Shown here in pieces: positions 4,255 through 62,662 of a DNA stretch of 64,000 nt. The DNA is from Paramoeba atlantica (lineage: Eukaryota; Protista; Discosea). Each line of letters starts with the position of its first letter. The first letter of the stretch is position 1. The stretch is taken from the NCBI GenBank assembly GCA_977017575.1, contig CDRNVI010000087.1, forward strand, positions 248,001-312,000. The letters run 5' to 3'. Under the pieces are notes generated by a model that was given only the letters and a program-made list of their open reading frames with translations, searched no databases and was not told where the DNA came from. Both the position numbers and the translations under genes were made by a program.

Positions 4255-5773
4255 TTCATTTCAGTTTCATACCGGGCGAGCCGGCAGAGAATTTAATTCG
4301 GTTTGCACACATACAACGTGTCTAACGAAAGTCTAATCAATCTTGGCGTGGTTCATCGGACCATGCGGGGTCCTCGCGCCGTGTCCAGATCACATAACTC
4401 CCGAAGATTGCACTTCGGATCATGTGTTGTACGCAGGAAGATGCCTCTTCTTCCCCATCGAACAGGACACTGACTAGTGAGGAGGTCGTGTTAGGCATTC
4501 CACGCGCTCCTATTTCAAAAACTATCGAATAGCAGGGTACATTTTCTGCACGACGCTTGAACATTAGCTGGTTGTACTTGTTTCGTTTGCGCTGATGAGC
4601 CTCAGCGAGATTCTCTTCCCAAGGTACTGTGAGTTCGATAATGTATTCGCATCCATTCTTGAGTTGCACTCAGCCGTCTGGCCGCAACAACGATAGATCG
4701 TTTGCCATCCAGTTCGGGGGGTTGCGCAGTCCCGGAATGTCAAAATGGGCTTTCGAAGTGTACGGAGACTTTAGGACATGAGTCGCGAGCTCTTGAAGCA
4801 CCAGATTATGTCGATATGAGTATCGTCCTTGCTCCAAGGATAAGGTACAGGAGGAGAGGACGTGACGCGGTGTTTGTATTTCTCTAGAACATACATGTAT
4901 GGGGCATGTCGTATTTGAGTGTGATGATATTCCCCATCTGTGGAGAGCGGCGCGGGAGGGGAGAGGTGTCAGGGTCATAATCGATGCTGCAAATCGGGAA
5001 AGCTTATGGTTATTTATTCCATTTATCGCTGCCGCAAACTGTTTAGCTGTGTCAGGATCAGCCGGGAGGTCCCACCATTTTGAACTTAATGAGGCCCGTT
5101 TTTTCAGTTTCTCTAACGTGTTCGTTTCATACTGTTTGCGTAGGGTCTCCTTGGCTCGGTTGATATCTGCAAGATCATCAAGAATATAAGTTGCTGGTCT
5201 TATCAAGCCTCGGCGGCGTAGATTCTTCTCTTCGTCTACCGTTACCCCCCCCCCCCCCCCCCCCTTACTTCACCACATTTAGCCACTCCGCATGTGGTGA
5301 AGTAAGGGGGGTGTCAGAATTTTCGCCCGATTCCTACTCTGTGATAACAGTTAACCCAGGTCAGAGATTGTAAATTTTCATTGATTTCAATATTTATTCA
5401 ATACACGATGGCCCCACCACTTCTATTCTTTAACGCGAGCCAAGTGACTCTATCCTCACCGTTGCCACACGAAACTGTTGCCGTACTGCCCTTCCCCGAT
5501 GATACTTCACCTACCCCATCCACCGCATTAATATTGAATGCATCTAACCATCTTGCTGAGCAGCCGCGGAAGGTTCGGATGGATCTTACCATACAACAAA
5601 AAAACAACCTATGTGCTAGTATAGATGCCGGCAAGTCTGTAAGCGTCGCCGCCCGAGATTACAAGGTCGAGGTAAGCACGGTACATAGAGTTTATCGGAA
5701 AAAAGAAGATTGGCATAAATTTACTCAACTTGGCTTTGGGAAATTGTTTCAGTACCACCCCCCTCGAGCAAAT

Positions 5774-5976
5774 CCAGGCATAAAGGGGCGAGGGAGATAC
5801 GAAGCAACAGATGTAGCAGATTCCCATTGAAAAGAAATCGTATCTCCGTGCACGAGAAATGCCTACCTATGCGCTCGCCTGCTTGGAGTCAACTTCGTGC
5901 AGGGAGATACGAATTCCTTTCAGTGGGAATCTGCTACATCTGTTGCTTCGTATCTGCCTCGCCCCTTTATGCCTGG
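5774..5976. mobile_element. MITE-like foldback (~75-80 bp inverted arms), probable AT target duplication
   Basis: CCAGGCATAAAGGGGCGAGGGAGATACGAAGCAACAGATGTAGCAGATTCCCA... is mirrored at ~5900..5976 and flanked by AT on both sides. Confidence 0.65.
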
Positions 5977-6094
5977 ATTCTACAAAAACAGTTTCGTCGC
6001 ATCAATCAGTAAAATTCATGGGCGTCATGGAAGTAAGAATTGACAAAAAATGTCAATCTTCTTCTCAAAAGTGGCTACTGAAGGCTTCTGAAAA

Positions 6095-7335
6095 AGTGTC
6101 CAGCTGACCACCCCCAGAAAAAGTGTTCAGCTGGCCACCCCCTGAAAAAGTGTCCAGCTGACCACCCCGTGGAAAAATGGCCAGCTGGCTACCCCCTGGA
6201 AATCTGGCCAACTGGCCACCCCCTGAAAAGTTGACCAGCTGGCCACCCCCTGGAAAAGTGGCCAGCTGACCACCCCCTGGAAAAGTGGCCAGCTGGCCAC
6301 CCCTTTAAAAAGTGGCCAGCTGGCCACCTCCTGGAAAAGTGGCCAGCTGACTACCCCCTGGTAACGTGGCCAGCTGACCACCCCCTGGTAACGTGGCCAG
6401 CTGGCCACCCCCTGGAAAAGTGGCCAGCTGGCCACCCCTTTAAAAAGTGGCCAGCTGGCCACCCCCTGGAAAAGTGGCCAACTGGCCACCCCCGTGAAAA
6501 GGTGGCCACCCCCTGGAAAAGTGGCCAGCTGACCACCCCCTGGAAAAGTGGCCAGCTGACCACCCCCTGGTAACGTGGCCAGCTGGCCACCACCTGGAAA
6601 AGTGGCCAGCTGACCACCCCTTTAAAAAGTGGCCAGCTGGCCACCCCCTGGAAAAGTGGCCAAATGGCCACCCCCTGAAAAGTGACCAACTGGCCACCCC
6701 CTGAAAAGGTGGCCAGCTGGCCACCCCTTGAAAAAGTGGCCAGCTAACCACCCGCTTAAAAAATGGCCAGCTGACCATCCCCTGGAAAAGTGGCCAGCTG
6801 ACCACACCCTGGAAAAGTGGCCAACTGGCCACCCACTGGAAAAGTGGCCAGCTGGCCACCACCTGGAAAAGTGGCCAGCTGACCACACCCTGGAAAAGTG
6901 GCCAACTGGCCACCCACTGGAAAAGTGGCCAGCTGGCCACCACCTGGAAAAGTGGCCAGCTGACCACCCCTGGAAAAAGTGGCCAGCTGACCACCCCCTT
7001 AAAAAGTGGCCAGATGACCACCCCTTTAAAAAGTGGCCAGCTAGCCACCCCCTGGAAAAGTGGCCACCTGGCCACGCCCTGAAAAGGTGGTCAGCTGGCC
7101 GCCCCCTTAAAAAGTGGCTAGCTGGCCGCCCCCTGAAAAAGTGGCCAGCTGAGCACCCCCTGAAAAAGTGGCTAGCTGGCCGCTCACTGAAAAAGTGGCC
7201 AGCTGGCCACCTCCTGGAAAAGCGGCCAGCTGGCCATCCCCTGGAAAAGTGGCCAGCTGACCACCCCCTGGAAAAGTGGCCAGCTGACCACCCCCTGGAA
7301 AAGTGGCCAGCTGGCCACCCCCTGAAAAAGTGACC
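6095..7335. repeat. 27-bp minisatellite with palindromic core (~45 units)
   Basis: Consensus GAAAAGTGGCCAGCTGGCCACCCCCTG; the core GTGGCCAGCTGGCCAC is a perfect 16-bp palindrome. Degenerate units continue to ~7500. Confidence 0.95.
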
Positions 7336-60385: not shown

Positions 60386-60844
60386 ACCGCGGCTCACAAT
60401 TTTATGAATTTGAATAAATATAATCTTATGAGTTTGAATAAATTACGCGGTGTGTTGTCCGGTGGAAAGTGTGTGTTTACTATCGTCACTCCTTTCGCAT
60501 GCGCTTCACTGCTATTTCAGATTTCTATTTTTCATTGCTATTTTCGAGGAGATAACGCACTAGTCGATGATTTTTTTCGGCGGTGAAACCTCGGGGAAGA
60601 GGAAGCATGTTTCGATAGCTATGTAACCCAGGCTAAAGTGGACAAGAGAGGTTCTAAAAGCATCTTTAAACAACCCCAAAAATGGAATGGTCTCTTCCGG
60701 TTTGTAAAGGATTCCGATGTGACAAAAGAATCTTTAAGGGACACGCCCTTCCATTTTTAGCGTTATTATATATTATAGCGTTATTATATTATAGCGTTAT
60801 TGTCTTCATGAAATGGGTGACAGGCATGAATTTAGGGCTGTTGT

Positions 60845-61020
60845 CTCTCTCTTCTCTACTTCTCTCTCTTCTCTACTTCTCTCTCTCTCTCTCTCTCTTC
60901 TCTACTCTCTCTCTCTCTCTCTCTCTCTCTCTCTCTCTCTCTCTCTCTCTCTCTCTCTCTCTCTCTCTCTCTCTCTCTCTCTCTCTCTCTCTCTCTCTCT
61001 CTCTCTCTCTTTCTCTCTCC
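60845..61020. repeat. (CT)n microsatellite
   Basis: Long, nearly pure CT run. Confidence 0.97.
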
Positions 61021-62165
61021 TCTTTTCTTTTTTTCTTATCTTTCAGTGGGTAAAGTGATCTACGTTGATAACGTAGTATATCACTTCTACGCCAAATACT
61101 TCCACCTATCTTCCTCACACTTCGCTCCAATGATATTAGGTATCAGCGAAGCGACGCCGGGCTTGGAACCGGTATCTAGCGTGTTTACGTAGGTGGTGAT
61201 AATGGGCGTATACTTGAGGGGCTGCGGGTGACGTTAACCGCGGTCTCGCGCGCCACGACCCGCAGCCCCTCACTTATATAGGATCTCTACCAAGTGCGAT
61301 ATTCACACAAAATGAAATTCTGCAGAAAATCCAGGCAGCAGAAAACGAGCCAAAGGAGAAATAATAAAATTCGTACGTATACTTGCAGTGTTAGACCTTA
61401 AACGTTAGTTTTCAGGTTTTGCTTATGCCCATGGGGTCGAAGAAGTGGGTTCTACCATTAAAAGAGTCAAAAAAGAGAGGAGAAATCCCAATTTTTGGAC
61501 TTTTTTAAATAAAAATTTGCTCCCAAGAATAGTGTCGGAAAAATAGTCGCAAAACGTCAAGAGCGATTTAGAAGAACATTTAGGCACATGTAAAGCGCAA
61601 AAAGACTGCATTTCACGTTACTTTTTGCACGTTAAAATTACTTTTTCGGACAAAAATGGATCATTTTGACCCCAAATGCAAAGCGCGGGTTCGGTGCGGG
61701 TCCGGCGATGCACACCCGCAGCCCCCCACATTTCAAGATCCAGGCTCGTGATGATGGCAACTCTTGATGTGGGATTTCCCAGGAACTCCGTGTTTCGGGC
61801 ACGCAGGGTGAGTAGGAAACCCGTGATGGTGCATCCCATTTTCGGCGTTCGCACCAAGGGGGATGTTCGCAACACTTCGCCTGTGCTTTATACAGTTGAA
61901 CACCGGACATCGCGTACAAATGGGGCGCAATGGGGTATCACGCCAGAGATCAGGATGACGGAGCCGGGGATCTTGAATTGTCGCCGGGGCGTCTCCCAGT
62001 TGTCCACGTCTGTGCAAGCCCCAAACAGACAAACCCGGGACAGGGTTTATGTTTAACAATATCTCTACACACATCTCTAAATTTTTATGTACAAAAACAT
62101 GTAGAAAATGTTAGAAAATTGTTCAATAAAAAAAAGAGTTCTTTGGCCGGAAGTATAAAGGGAGG

Positions 62166-62662
62166 TACTGATTCTTCGTCTGTATAAAATTTTGTTTTGC
62201 CATGCACTTGTAGTGCAGAGATAAGCCCCAGTGTCTTTACCCGCATACAACGGGTGGATCACGCGAGGGTTCGTCTTCGCCTGTGGTAAGTGGGTGCAGA
62301 GAGATCGGTTGTCATGTGCGGGTGCAGAGAGCTGCGACAGAGCGGAGGTGCAGTGAGCCGGGAGGCTCGTGGGCGGAAGACACGTCTAGTGGTCCTCAAG
62401 GGAGGCCACCGTGACGCATTACCTCCTCGGAAAGGCAGTCACGGGAGAAAGAGAAGCCGAGAGAGGGAAGCACACTCACTCCAGGGGAGTGAGTCGGGAA
62501 GGGGTGAAGGGGTGGTAGCGCGTCCCCTGCTTCAACAATAGAGAGGGACAGTTTCGGCCTTAGTGCCGGCCGGCAACGGGCATAAAAATACAGTAAGAGT
62601 ATGCCCGTTGCCGGGGAAAGAAAGGATGAACTAAGGAAAAAGTACGAACAAGGTACAGAAAC
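62166..62662 (-). mobile_element. SL-headed SINE-like element, copy C (duplicate of A)
   Basis: TSD at 62148..62165 and 62662..62679; SL relic 62647..62662. Confidence 0.8.

Follow-up and report, generated by a model that had tools for sequence, protein, structure and literature searches.

The R2 protein selects its own 3' untranslated region (UTR), and its binding depends on two stem-loops (PMC11194090), while stringent-type (L2-clade) proteins of long interspersed nuclear elements (LINEs) bind a 3' stem-loop that is common to the LINE and its short interspersed nuclear element (SINE) (PMC4176376, PMC1636434). LINE 3' recognition hairpins and their sharing with non-autonomous partners are already known, and what we describe here is a new family of this kind, in a 64,000-nt stretch of DNA (the window) from contig CDRNVI010000087.1 of the Paramoeba atlantica assembly GCA_977017575.1. 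The window holds three LINE copies, A, B and C, and copies of a non-autonomous element, SINEa, and our subject is the hairpin near their 3' ends, P3, together with the 3' module to which it belongs. Mobile elements of free-living euglenozoans are almost undescribed, and for the Diplonema papillatum genome SLACS- and R2-like reverse transcriptase (RT) gene models have been reported, with the non-coding parts of the genome left unanalyzed (PMC10161547).

Related 3' ends were added from loci outside the window. Relatives were sought with the RT-endonuclease part of the 1528-residue protein of element B, and the surrounding DNA was then taken; seven loci come from the ENA assembly ERZ24900291 and one (L012) from a JGI metagenome. 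The resulting sample comprises 11 LINE lineages, at ~40-60% amino acid identity, and two non-autonomous subfamilies, SINEa and SINEb, in only ~180 kb of genome sequence. Judged by its sequence, the family is an R2-like non-long-terminal-repeat retrotransposon of the restriction-like endonuclease (RLE) type, with predicted RT, CCHC and PD-(D/E)xK endonuclease parts and no apurinic-type endonuclease (APE). The B protein matches Pfam RVT_1 (E=3e-32, residues 836-1073), in the PDB R2 proteins match it best and LINE-1 ORF2p comes next, and the alignment to R2 proteins starts at the N-terminal extension of the RT and continues through the C-terminal RLE, whereas Exo_endo_phos, the APE domain, gives no match in this protein even at E=10. 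The CCHC/RLE motifs CPICKLEPQTTRHVLSGC, RPDG, IIELT.PWEEN and K..KY align to the R2 RLE and are conserved in nine lineages. A and C share ~45-55% amino acid identity with B over the RT-endonuclease part and less N-terminally, a divergence that makes A, B and C three different lineages of one family.

A terminal hairpin that covaries across LINE and non-autonomous 3' ends

We find P3 in every sampled LINE lineage and in both non-autonomous subfamilies. In the RNA sense it consists of CUC, a stem of 4-7 bp that opens with U-A, a small loop of 3-6 nt, and then UGA. All 15 element 3' ends from the window and L001-L006 have it, as do L009 and L012; a scan of the loci had supplied three of the non-autonomous copies (L005:8956, L005:9531 and L006:6775). 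The original prediction, made from the window alone, named six hairpin sites there, all of which we read directly at the same coordinates, and it held that many full-length copies without the stem would speak against its reading; every related LINE 3' end that was sampled carries it.

The pattern CTCTGC-N7-16-ATGA matches the window eight times against 0.97 expected from shuffles, with two of the eight representing an internal SINE motif and one probably due to chance. This variable gap succeeded where a fixed spacing, CTCTGC-N17-ATGA, gave zero matches because loop and stem lengths vary. A looser hairpin scan of 127 kb returned 22 matches versus ~7 expected, and the 15 that have a stem of at least 5 bp or the upstream motif described below are, every one, element 3' ends; the other seven are chance-like. 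When the interior of each hairpin was shuffled, a stem as long as that observed appeared in 0.03-1.4% of trials.

The stems themselves differ from element to element, with 13 different P3 stems among 15 sequences. Pair 1 is U-A in all; pair 2 is G.U (6), G-C (4) or A-U (5) (n=15); pair 3 is C-G (13), G-C (1) or U-A (1); and pairs 4 to 6 show all four Watson-Crick types, as counted from a model-fitted alignment and a hand-anchored table. Invariant across the family is CUCU...A-UGA, except that L004 has UAGA and one SINE copy has UGG. The flank CTCTGC, originally described as fixed, is so within the window, but across the family its G and C belong to the stem, as pairs 2 and 3, and covary. The four 6-bp stems first reported all pair; that of C is better read as a 5-bp stem with the loop TTTA.

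In the model-fitted alignment (A5) 94.2% of cells are paired versus 70.8% in shuffles, and double changes occur at five of the six pairs, in 20 cells versus 4.7 in shuffles. None of 500 shuffles reaches any of five measures and every slid register fails, which bears out the earlier claim of compensatory changes. A MAFFT alignment of the hairpin (A3) shifted the inner 3' arm of four sequences (A, L002, L004 and L005) off register and was used only to seed the model. The covariance model (R1), a check that the original prediction had proposed, was built from the 15 sequences and retrieves exactly those 15 sites at E<1 from both strands of 154 kb. It also detects the hairpin of L012, which it had not seen, at E=0.001, and with filters off it returns the 3' end of L009, likewise unseen, as the top match of that locus (16.4 bits). 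RNAalifold gives the same P3 and adds two pairs, C-G and U-A, that form between the invariant flanks and leave a U bulged.

A protein tree based on the C-terminal 169 residues of nine LINE lineages, with moderate support, resolves two groups, (L006m, L003, (C, L001)) and (B, (A, L004, (L002, L005))). A-U at pair 2 is present in both halves of this tree, and sister elements differ at that pair, with G-C versus G.U in C and L001 and G.U versus A-U in L002 and L005. This scatter of pair-2 states over the tree, together with the differences between sisters, indicates repeated independent changes by way of a wobble intermediate.

The two-hairpin module, its strand polarity and the ends of the copies

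The predicted 3' signal is bipartite, which the original prediction had overlooked, with a second hairpin, P2, in an outer helix and P3 beyond it. P2 lies ~20-47 nt upstream of CUC and has the conserved loop U-YRUAU-G (e.g., UCGUAUG, UUGUAUG and UCAUAUG) on stems that vary (CCCG/CGGG, CACG/UGUG, GCG/CGC, CGCG/CGCG and GUGCG/CGCAC). Its pairing reaches 85% of cells compared with 71.5% in shuffles, its covariation score lies above all 500 shuffles, and one pair is CG in six, AU in three and GC in three sequences with zero mismatches. In minimum-energy folds of the stretch from the stop codon to 12 nt beyond P3, most lineages show P2 enclosed by an outer helix, P1, and seven of nine UTRs have z = -2.5 to -5.3 (z = -4.8 for the 93-nt UTR of B). 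An extra hairpin, P2b, is found in C, L001, L006m and SINEb. The 3' UTRs are 81-106 nt long, except in L003, where a 61-nt tandem duplication brings the length to 165 nt; this duplication (L003:7519-7640) spans P1 and P2, and its junction falls directly after the CUC that precedes the terminal hairpin. Spacers of 20-47 nt and the optional P2b defeat MAFFT, and P2 and P3 were aligned separately. Rfam returns no family at gathering score in the window and none at E up to 5 on the UTR of B, and a C/D-box or kink-turn reading of AUGA(U)AA was ruled out, with AUGA alone conserved.

Both hairpins are polar. G.U stands at P3 pair 2 in six of 15 sequences and U.G closes the P2 loop in 12 of 12, and on the complementary strand the same wobbles are A.C mismatches. 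This one-sided tolerance of wobbles, seen on the sense strand alone, suggests that it is the sense RNA that is active.

Copies end at a short, nearly constant distance beyond P3. C, which is inserted in a dispersed repeat with two uninterrupted copies in the window (self-comparison) and has zero target-site duplication (junction alignment), ends at 14 nt counted from the U of UGA, as defined by the two empty sites. The ends lie 12 nt after the stem in SINEa and 13 nt after it in the SINEb copy at L005, to which the leader head of the following element is directly joined, and 10-12 nt after it in B, where Logan contigs of three runs break at 34863-34865 and depth falls ~ten-fold. Of the distances first proposed, about 12-15 nt, and about 35 nt in A and C, the second fails for C. 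The tail after UGA is A/U-rich and 10-14 nt long, and, as had been claimed, no copy carries a poly(A) tail. At some loci tandem repeats follow UGA, namely (TA)n at L001:7345-7380, (TCA)n at L009:4886-4902 and (CCT)n at L006:7545-7566 on the minus strand; in L010 and L011, two more distant relatives discussed below, the tails are (ATTTTT)n (L010:5705-5785 and L011:7306-7352), with run lengths that differ between the two copies. Such tails could arise from RT slippage at initiation or from insertion into microsatellites.

Every copy starts with a variably truncated ...GATACAGTTTCTGTACCTTGTTG; the core of this sequence, ACAGTTTCTGTAC, is shared with the spliced leaders of kinetoplastids and diplonemids (PMC3795323), and on this basis we read the genome as euglenozoan. 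The exact leader sequence was not found in the literature searched. Leader-like sequence occurs at the 5' end only and is part of the inserted DNA, as the empty sites of C have no leader. In SINEa copy 2 the leader is joined straight to TTCATCC..., whereas the remaining copies and SINEb have an intervening ~15 nt whose last two are AG (window 42176-42207 and 57530-57556; L005:8990-9030; L006:6228-6275), which looks as if a second trans-splicing event had used that AG.

SINEa and SINEb are alike in their leader head, in a 5' region and in a central core with GGTGGCCTCCCTTGAGGACCAC, and differ in their 3' modules. That of SINEa is the short form (P2, P3), as in the clade of B, and that of SINEb is the long form with P1 and P2b, as in the clade of C. 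The name SINE, under which the first of these was reported, does not hold in the strict sense, since there is no RNA polymerase III (Pol III) head and the head is spliced-leader sequence; ARAGORN finds no tRNA, and Rfam finds no family in the window, L005 or L006. Both are non-coding retroposons derived from trans-spliced RNA. The three copies reported in the window all carry the hairpin, but copies 1 and 3 belong, flanks included, to one duplicated 2-kb segment (41539-42756 equals 61994-63211 at 97% identity by self-comparison), so that the three represent two independent insertions. A fourth SINEa copy lies in L005. Among the SINEa copies the P2 and P3 stems are unchanged and the spacer between them has diverged.

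Two further features of these elements lie outside the 3' module. The core GGTGGCCTCCCTTGAGGACCAC is itself a hairpin (window 41980-42010 and 57290-57330, both on the minus strand; L005:8610-8650; L006:6490-6530) and is strongly conserved though the 3' modules differ, which recalls the cores of SINE superfamilies. The SINEa body contains about six dispersed copies of CAGCTCTCTGCACC (window 57090-57260, minus strand, and 41800-41900; L005:9300-9480), repeating the CUCUGCAC 5' half of the terminal hairpin without its 3' arm; these may serve as decoy or additional binding sites, or may be remnants of duplicated tails.

Probable template recognition by the 3' module and the alternatives

We consider it likely that the P3-containing 3' module is a template recognition and positioning signal for target-primed reverse transcription (TPRT). 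Structure, covariation, strand polarity, the fixed junction distance and the sharing between LINEs and non-autonomous elements come directly from computation; protein binding, the initiation point and mobilization in trans are what we infer from sequence. In the proposed mechanism the element's own protein would bind the P1-P2-P3 module in the sense-strand RNA and so choose its template, and the bound module would set the template 3' end at the nicked target. TPRT would then start a fixed few nucleotides downstream of P3, and leader-headed non-autonomous elements with a short or a long module would be copied in trans.

The original prediction had read the hairpin as such a cis signal, and all stringent-type features that can be computed are present, but neither the SINEa stem (UGCACU/AGUGCA) nor the SINEb stem occurs in any of the 11 LINEs in the ~180 kb sampled. 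This mismatch is the first of several points that weigh on the other side. The A5 alignment is fitted to the model's own structure, which favors pairing, and four of its 15 rows are near-identical SINEa copies. For P2, the count of doubly changed pairs lies within the range of the shuffles (90/500), and the covariation comes mainly from one pair; P1 is predicted from folds. The organism's one RNA run covers only the spliced-leader part of the stretch. Among more distant relatives, L007 and L008 (26-34% identity, from other assemblies) have no recognizable motif and no definable 3' end, and the 33%-identical L010 and L011 have a terminal hairpin followed by UGA but no CUCU flank, and the model gives them no score.

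The copies end without poly(A) although euglenozoan mRNAs normally have it, and a stem of 5-7 bp with a small loop, conserved flanks and a fixed 10-14 nt beyond would suit a cleavage ruler. The module might on this account be a signal through which a host factor directs 3'-end formation or stability in the manner of the histone stem-loop, with the RT copying the non-polyadenylated end that results. We regard this as unlikely. A host factor would be expected to keep the stem constant, yet there are 13 stems in 15 sequences; the module is confined to these retroelement ends in 154 kb; and the nearest protein relatives, the R2 proteins, bind their own 3' UTR (PMC11194090). Rfam gives no match, the histone stem-loop included, and a histone-type 3' stem-loop was rejected on this ground and because the stem sequence is not conserved. 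A host role in 3'-end formation is, however, compatible with recognition by the RT, and both could coexist.

An action of the palindrome as DNA, either as an RLE site or through fold-back of the cDNA for second-strand synthesis or integration, appears very improbable. G.U is allowed on the sense strand only, and would be an A.C mismatch in duplex DNA or in the cDNA strand; and while restriction-like endonucleases often cut at or near palindromes, and one non-autonomous element in L005 does abut the 3' tail of another, 13 different stems are more than a sequence-specific nuclease site would allow, and at C the target before insertion carried neither such a palindrome nor a duplication. It is barely conceivable that the hairpins have no function and reflect a shared ancestry of the 3' ends together with chance palindromes chosen by eye: short palindromes are common (~7 by chance with the loose pattern in 127 kb) and the relatedness of the copies inflates shuffle tests, but the hairpin stays in register with invariant flanks between elements whose proteins are ~40-60% identical and whose spacers are unalignable, five of six pairs carry double changes repeated independently on the tree, and an unseen relative from a different data source also has the hairpin.

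If the module is a recognition signal for TPRT, as we favor, a broader and much more tentative proposal is that the ~90-nt two-hairpin module acts as a portable tag. An R2-like enzyme might start cDNA ~12 nt past P3 on trans-spliced transcripts cut from polycistronic precursors, regardless of downstream sequence and without poly(A), with leader addition replacing the role of the R2 ribozyme. Any trans-spliced RNA that gained the module would then become mobile, which would explain a leader-headed non-autonomous superfamily that swaps short and long tails to match LINE clades, and the hairpin-UGA element of L010 and L011 would make the strategy clade-wide. A ~90-nt covarying module that is easily mutated, together with an intact 1528-residue protein, offers a system for template choice and positioning by an RLE-type RT, a topical question now that R2-type enzymes are under development for gene insertion (PMC13000458, PMC13188248). 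The covariance model of the module can be used to annotate the 3' ends of autonomous and non-autonomous copies alike.

Elements of the window and comparison with known systems

The features of the three LINE copies and of SINEa are collected in Table 1, with the P3 arms of the loci outside the window. With B as the tblastn query, the protein match of A extends over ~4355-11946 on the minus strand and that of C over 42882-47577; the 5' head of A is truncated to CAGTTTCTG....

Table 1 Features of the retroelements in the window and P3 arms at related loci (RNA sense; ORF, open reading frame)
Feature	Position	Strand	Sequence or content	Basis or remark
Element A, LINE copy	4255..12044	-	split by 4.3-kb insertion at 5240-9593	tblastn, 5' head; 3' limit approximate
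A, CUC + P3 + UGA	4267..4289	-	UGCCGG-CUCGC-CCGGUA	direct reading, model
A, P2	4306..4320	-	CACG-UUGUAUG-UGUG	alignment, fold
Element B, intact RLE-type LINE	30126..34865	+	leader-like 5' head, 1528-aa ORF, 3' UTR, tail	
B, ORF	30189-34775	+	1528 aa	open reading frame
B, P1 + P2	34787..34827	+	P2 stem GCG/CGC, loop U-CAUAU-G (34800-34814)	minimum-energy fold, loop-anchored alignment A6
B, CUC + P3 + UGA + tail	34836..34865	+	UGCCUU-AUA-AAGGUA, A/U-rich tail	model, pair counts
B, hairpin alone	34836..34856	+		direct reading
Element C, frameshifted LINE copy	42757..47692	-		limits from two empty sites (37060, 63211)
C, P1, P2 and extra P2b	42796..42849	-	P1 CAGAAGAAGAAG/CUUCUUCUG; P2 GUGCG-UUUUGGG-CGCAC (42822-42838)	
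C, CUC + P3 + UGA + tail	42757..42787	-	UGCAG-UUUA-CUGCA	ends 14 nt past stem
C, hairpin alone	42787..42768	-		direct reading
SINEa copy 1	41736..42207	-	P2 41784-41800, P3 41745-41765, 12-nt tail	in duplicated segment
SINEa copy 2	57001..57556	-	P2 57051-57067, P3 57010-57030	independent insertion with leader head
SINEa copy 3	62191..62662	-	P2 62239-62255, P3 62200-62220	UGG replaces UGA
L001, P3 arms			UGCAG / CUGUA	
L002, P3 arms			UGCUAUU / AAUAGUA	
L003, P3 arms			UAGUGA / UCACUA	
L004, P3 arms			UACAGG / CCUGUA	
L005, P3 arms			UACU / AGUA	GGAA loop
L006, P3 arms		-	UACAGU / ACUGUA	
L009, P3 arms			UAUCU / AGAUA	
L012, P3 arms			UGCUCC / GGAGUA	

Other features of the window lie around these elements. 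An ORF at 28-1572 on the plus strand encodes a second, more distant R2-like reverse transcriptase, which was rejected as a family member: tblastn at E=1e-3 finds no match between it and B, and downstream of it the model detects no terminal hairpin. The 4.3-kb insertion in A contains a 27-bp repeat array (6088-7509), which produces a spurious 316-aa ORF, and an ORF (8237-9307) with a DDE_1 transposase domain of the pogo/Tigger type and a PHD-like finger. Between A and B, 12379-27550 is an AT-richer stretch of at least five tandem copies of a ~2.9 kb unit that are 96-99% identical. Two DNA-transposon ORFs on the minus strand are IS30-like (39492-40646; HTH_38 + rve) and Tc1/mariner-like (49287-50408; HTH_Tnp_Tc3_2 + DDE_3), the latter with 113-bp inverted repeats at 49061-49172 and 50499-50611. 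In the B protein itself, residues 219-508 (30839-31720) hold three CxHxC-x5-6-CxHxCCK motifs, within the N-terminal 500 residues, that have no Pfam match.

The closest comparison by host group is with CRE, SLACS and CZAR of trypanosomatids, which share with the family described here the Euglenozoa, the RLE type and an association with the spliced leader. SLACS, CZAR and CRE insert site-specifically into spliced-leader RNA genes, whereas the leader here belongs to the inserted DNA and stands at the 5' end only; it is by this description of their insertion sites that we set them apart, and no named CRE, SLACS or CZAR sequence was among the matches returned by the searches for relatives. EhLINE and EhSINE of Entamoeba histolytica are likewise protist RLE LINEs without target specificity whose partner SINEs are mobilized by the LINE (PMC1635306, PMC3118788), but they belong to another lineage.

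A further relative comes from metagenome contigs of two samples, L010 and L011, which encode a 33%-identical RLE-type protein of 1850 aa with CCCH zinc fingers. The element is preceded by a kinetoplastid-type leader, ...GTTACAGTTTCTGTACTTTATTG (L010:1-60), and its 3' UTR closes with a hairpin of 6 bp (loop AUA), after which come UGA and (AUUUUU)n. The different type of this leader indicates that leader-headed RLE LINEs are present in at least one other euglenozoan.

R2 of Bombyx mori and its relatives resembles the present family in the order of RT, then CCHC and PD-(D/E)xK RLE, in its structured 3' UTR and in the absence of poly(A). R2 also has non-autonomous derivatives that retain its 3' end (R2 SIDEs). 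The R2 5' end is processed by a ribozyme, where the elements here instead carry a spliced leader. The two stem-loops to which the R2 protein binds find a parallel in P2 and P3 (PMC11194090). Unlike R2, the family is not in 28S ribosomal DNA, with C lying in a dispersed repeat and Rfam finding no ribosomal RNA in the window; its UTR measures ~90 nt rather than ~250 nt and has no Rfam match; and its N-terminal 770 residues differ and include the three CxHxC...CxHxCC motifs. Membership in the R2 clade proper was rejected for want of the 28S ribosomal DNA insertion and of a match between the 3' UTR and the described R2 RNA element.

The sharing of a near-terminal stem-loop tail between LINE and SINE, the absence of poly(A) and the occurrence of some tandem-repeat tails are features that the family has in common with UnaL2/UnaSINE1 of eel and ZfL2 of zebrafish, both of the L2 clade. 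Those elements differ in having an APE-type endonuclease, in belonging to another clade, and in the Pol III (tRNA-derived) heads of their SINEs. The conserved parts of the hairpins also differ: in UnaL2 and ZfL2 these are the loop plus an internal loop, and in the present family they are the flanks and the first pair, which are invariant, with the P3 loop free to vary.

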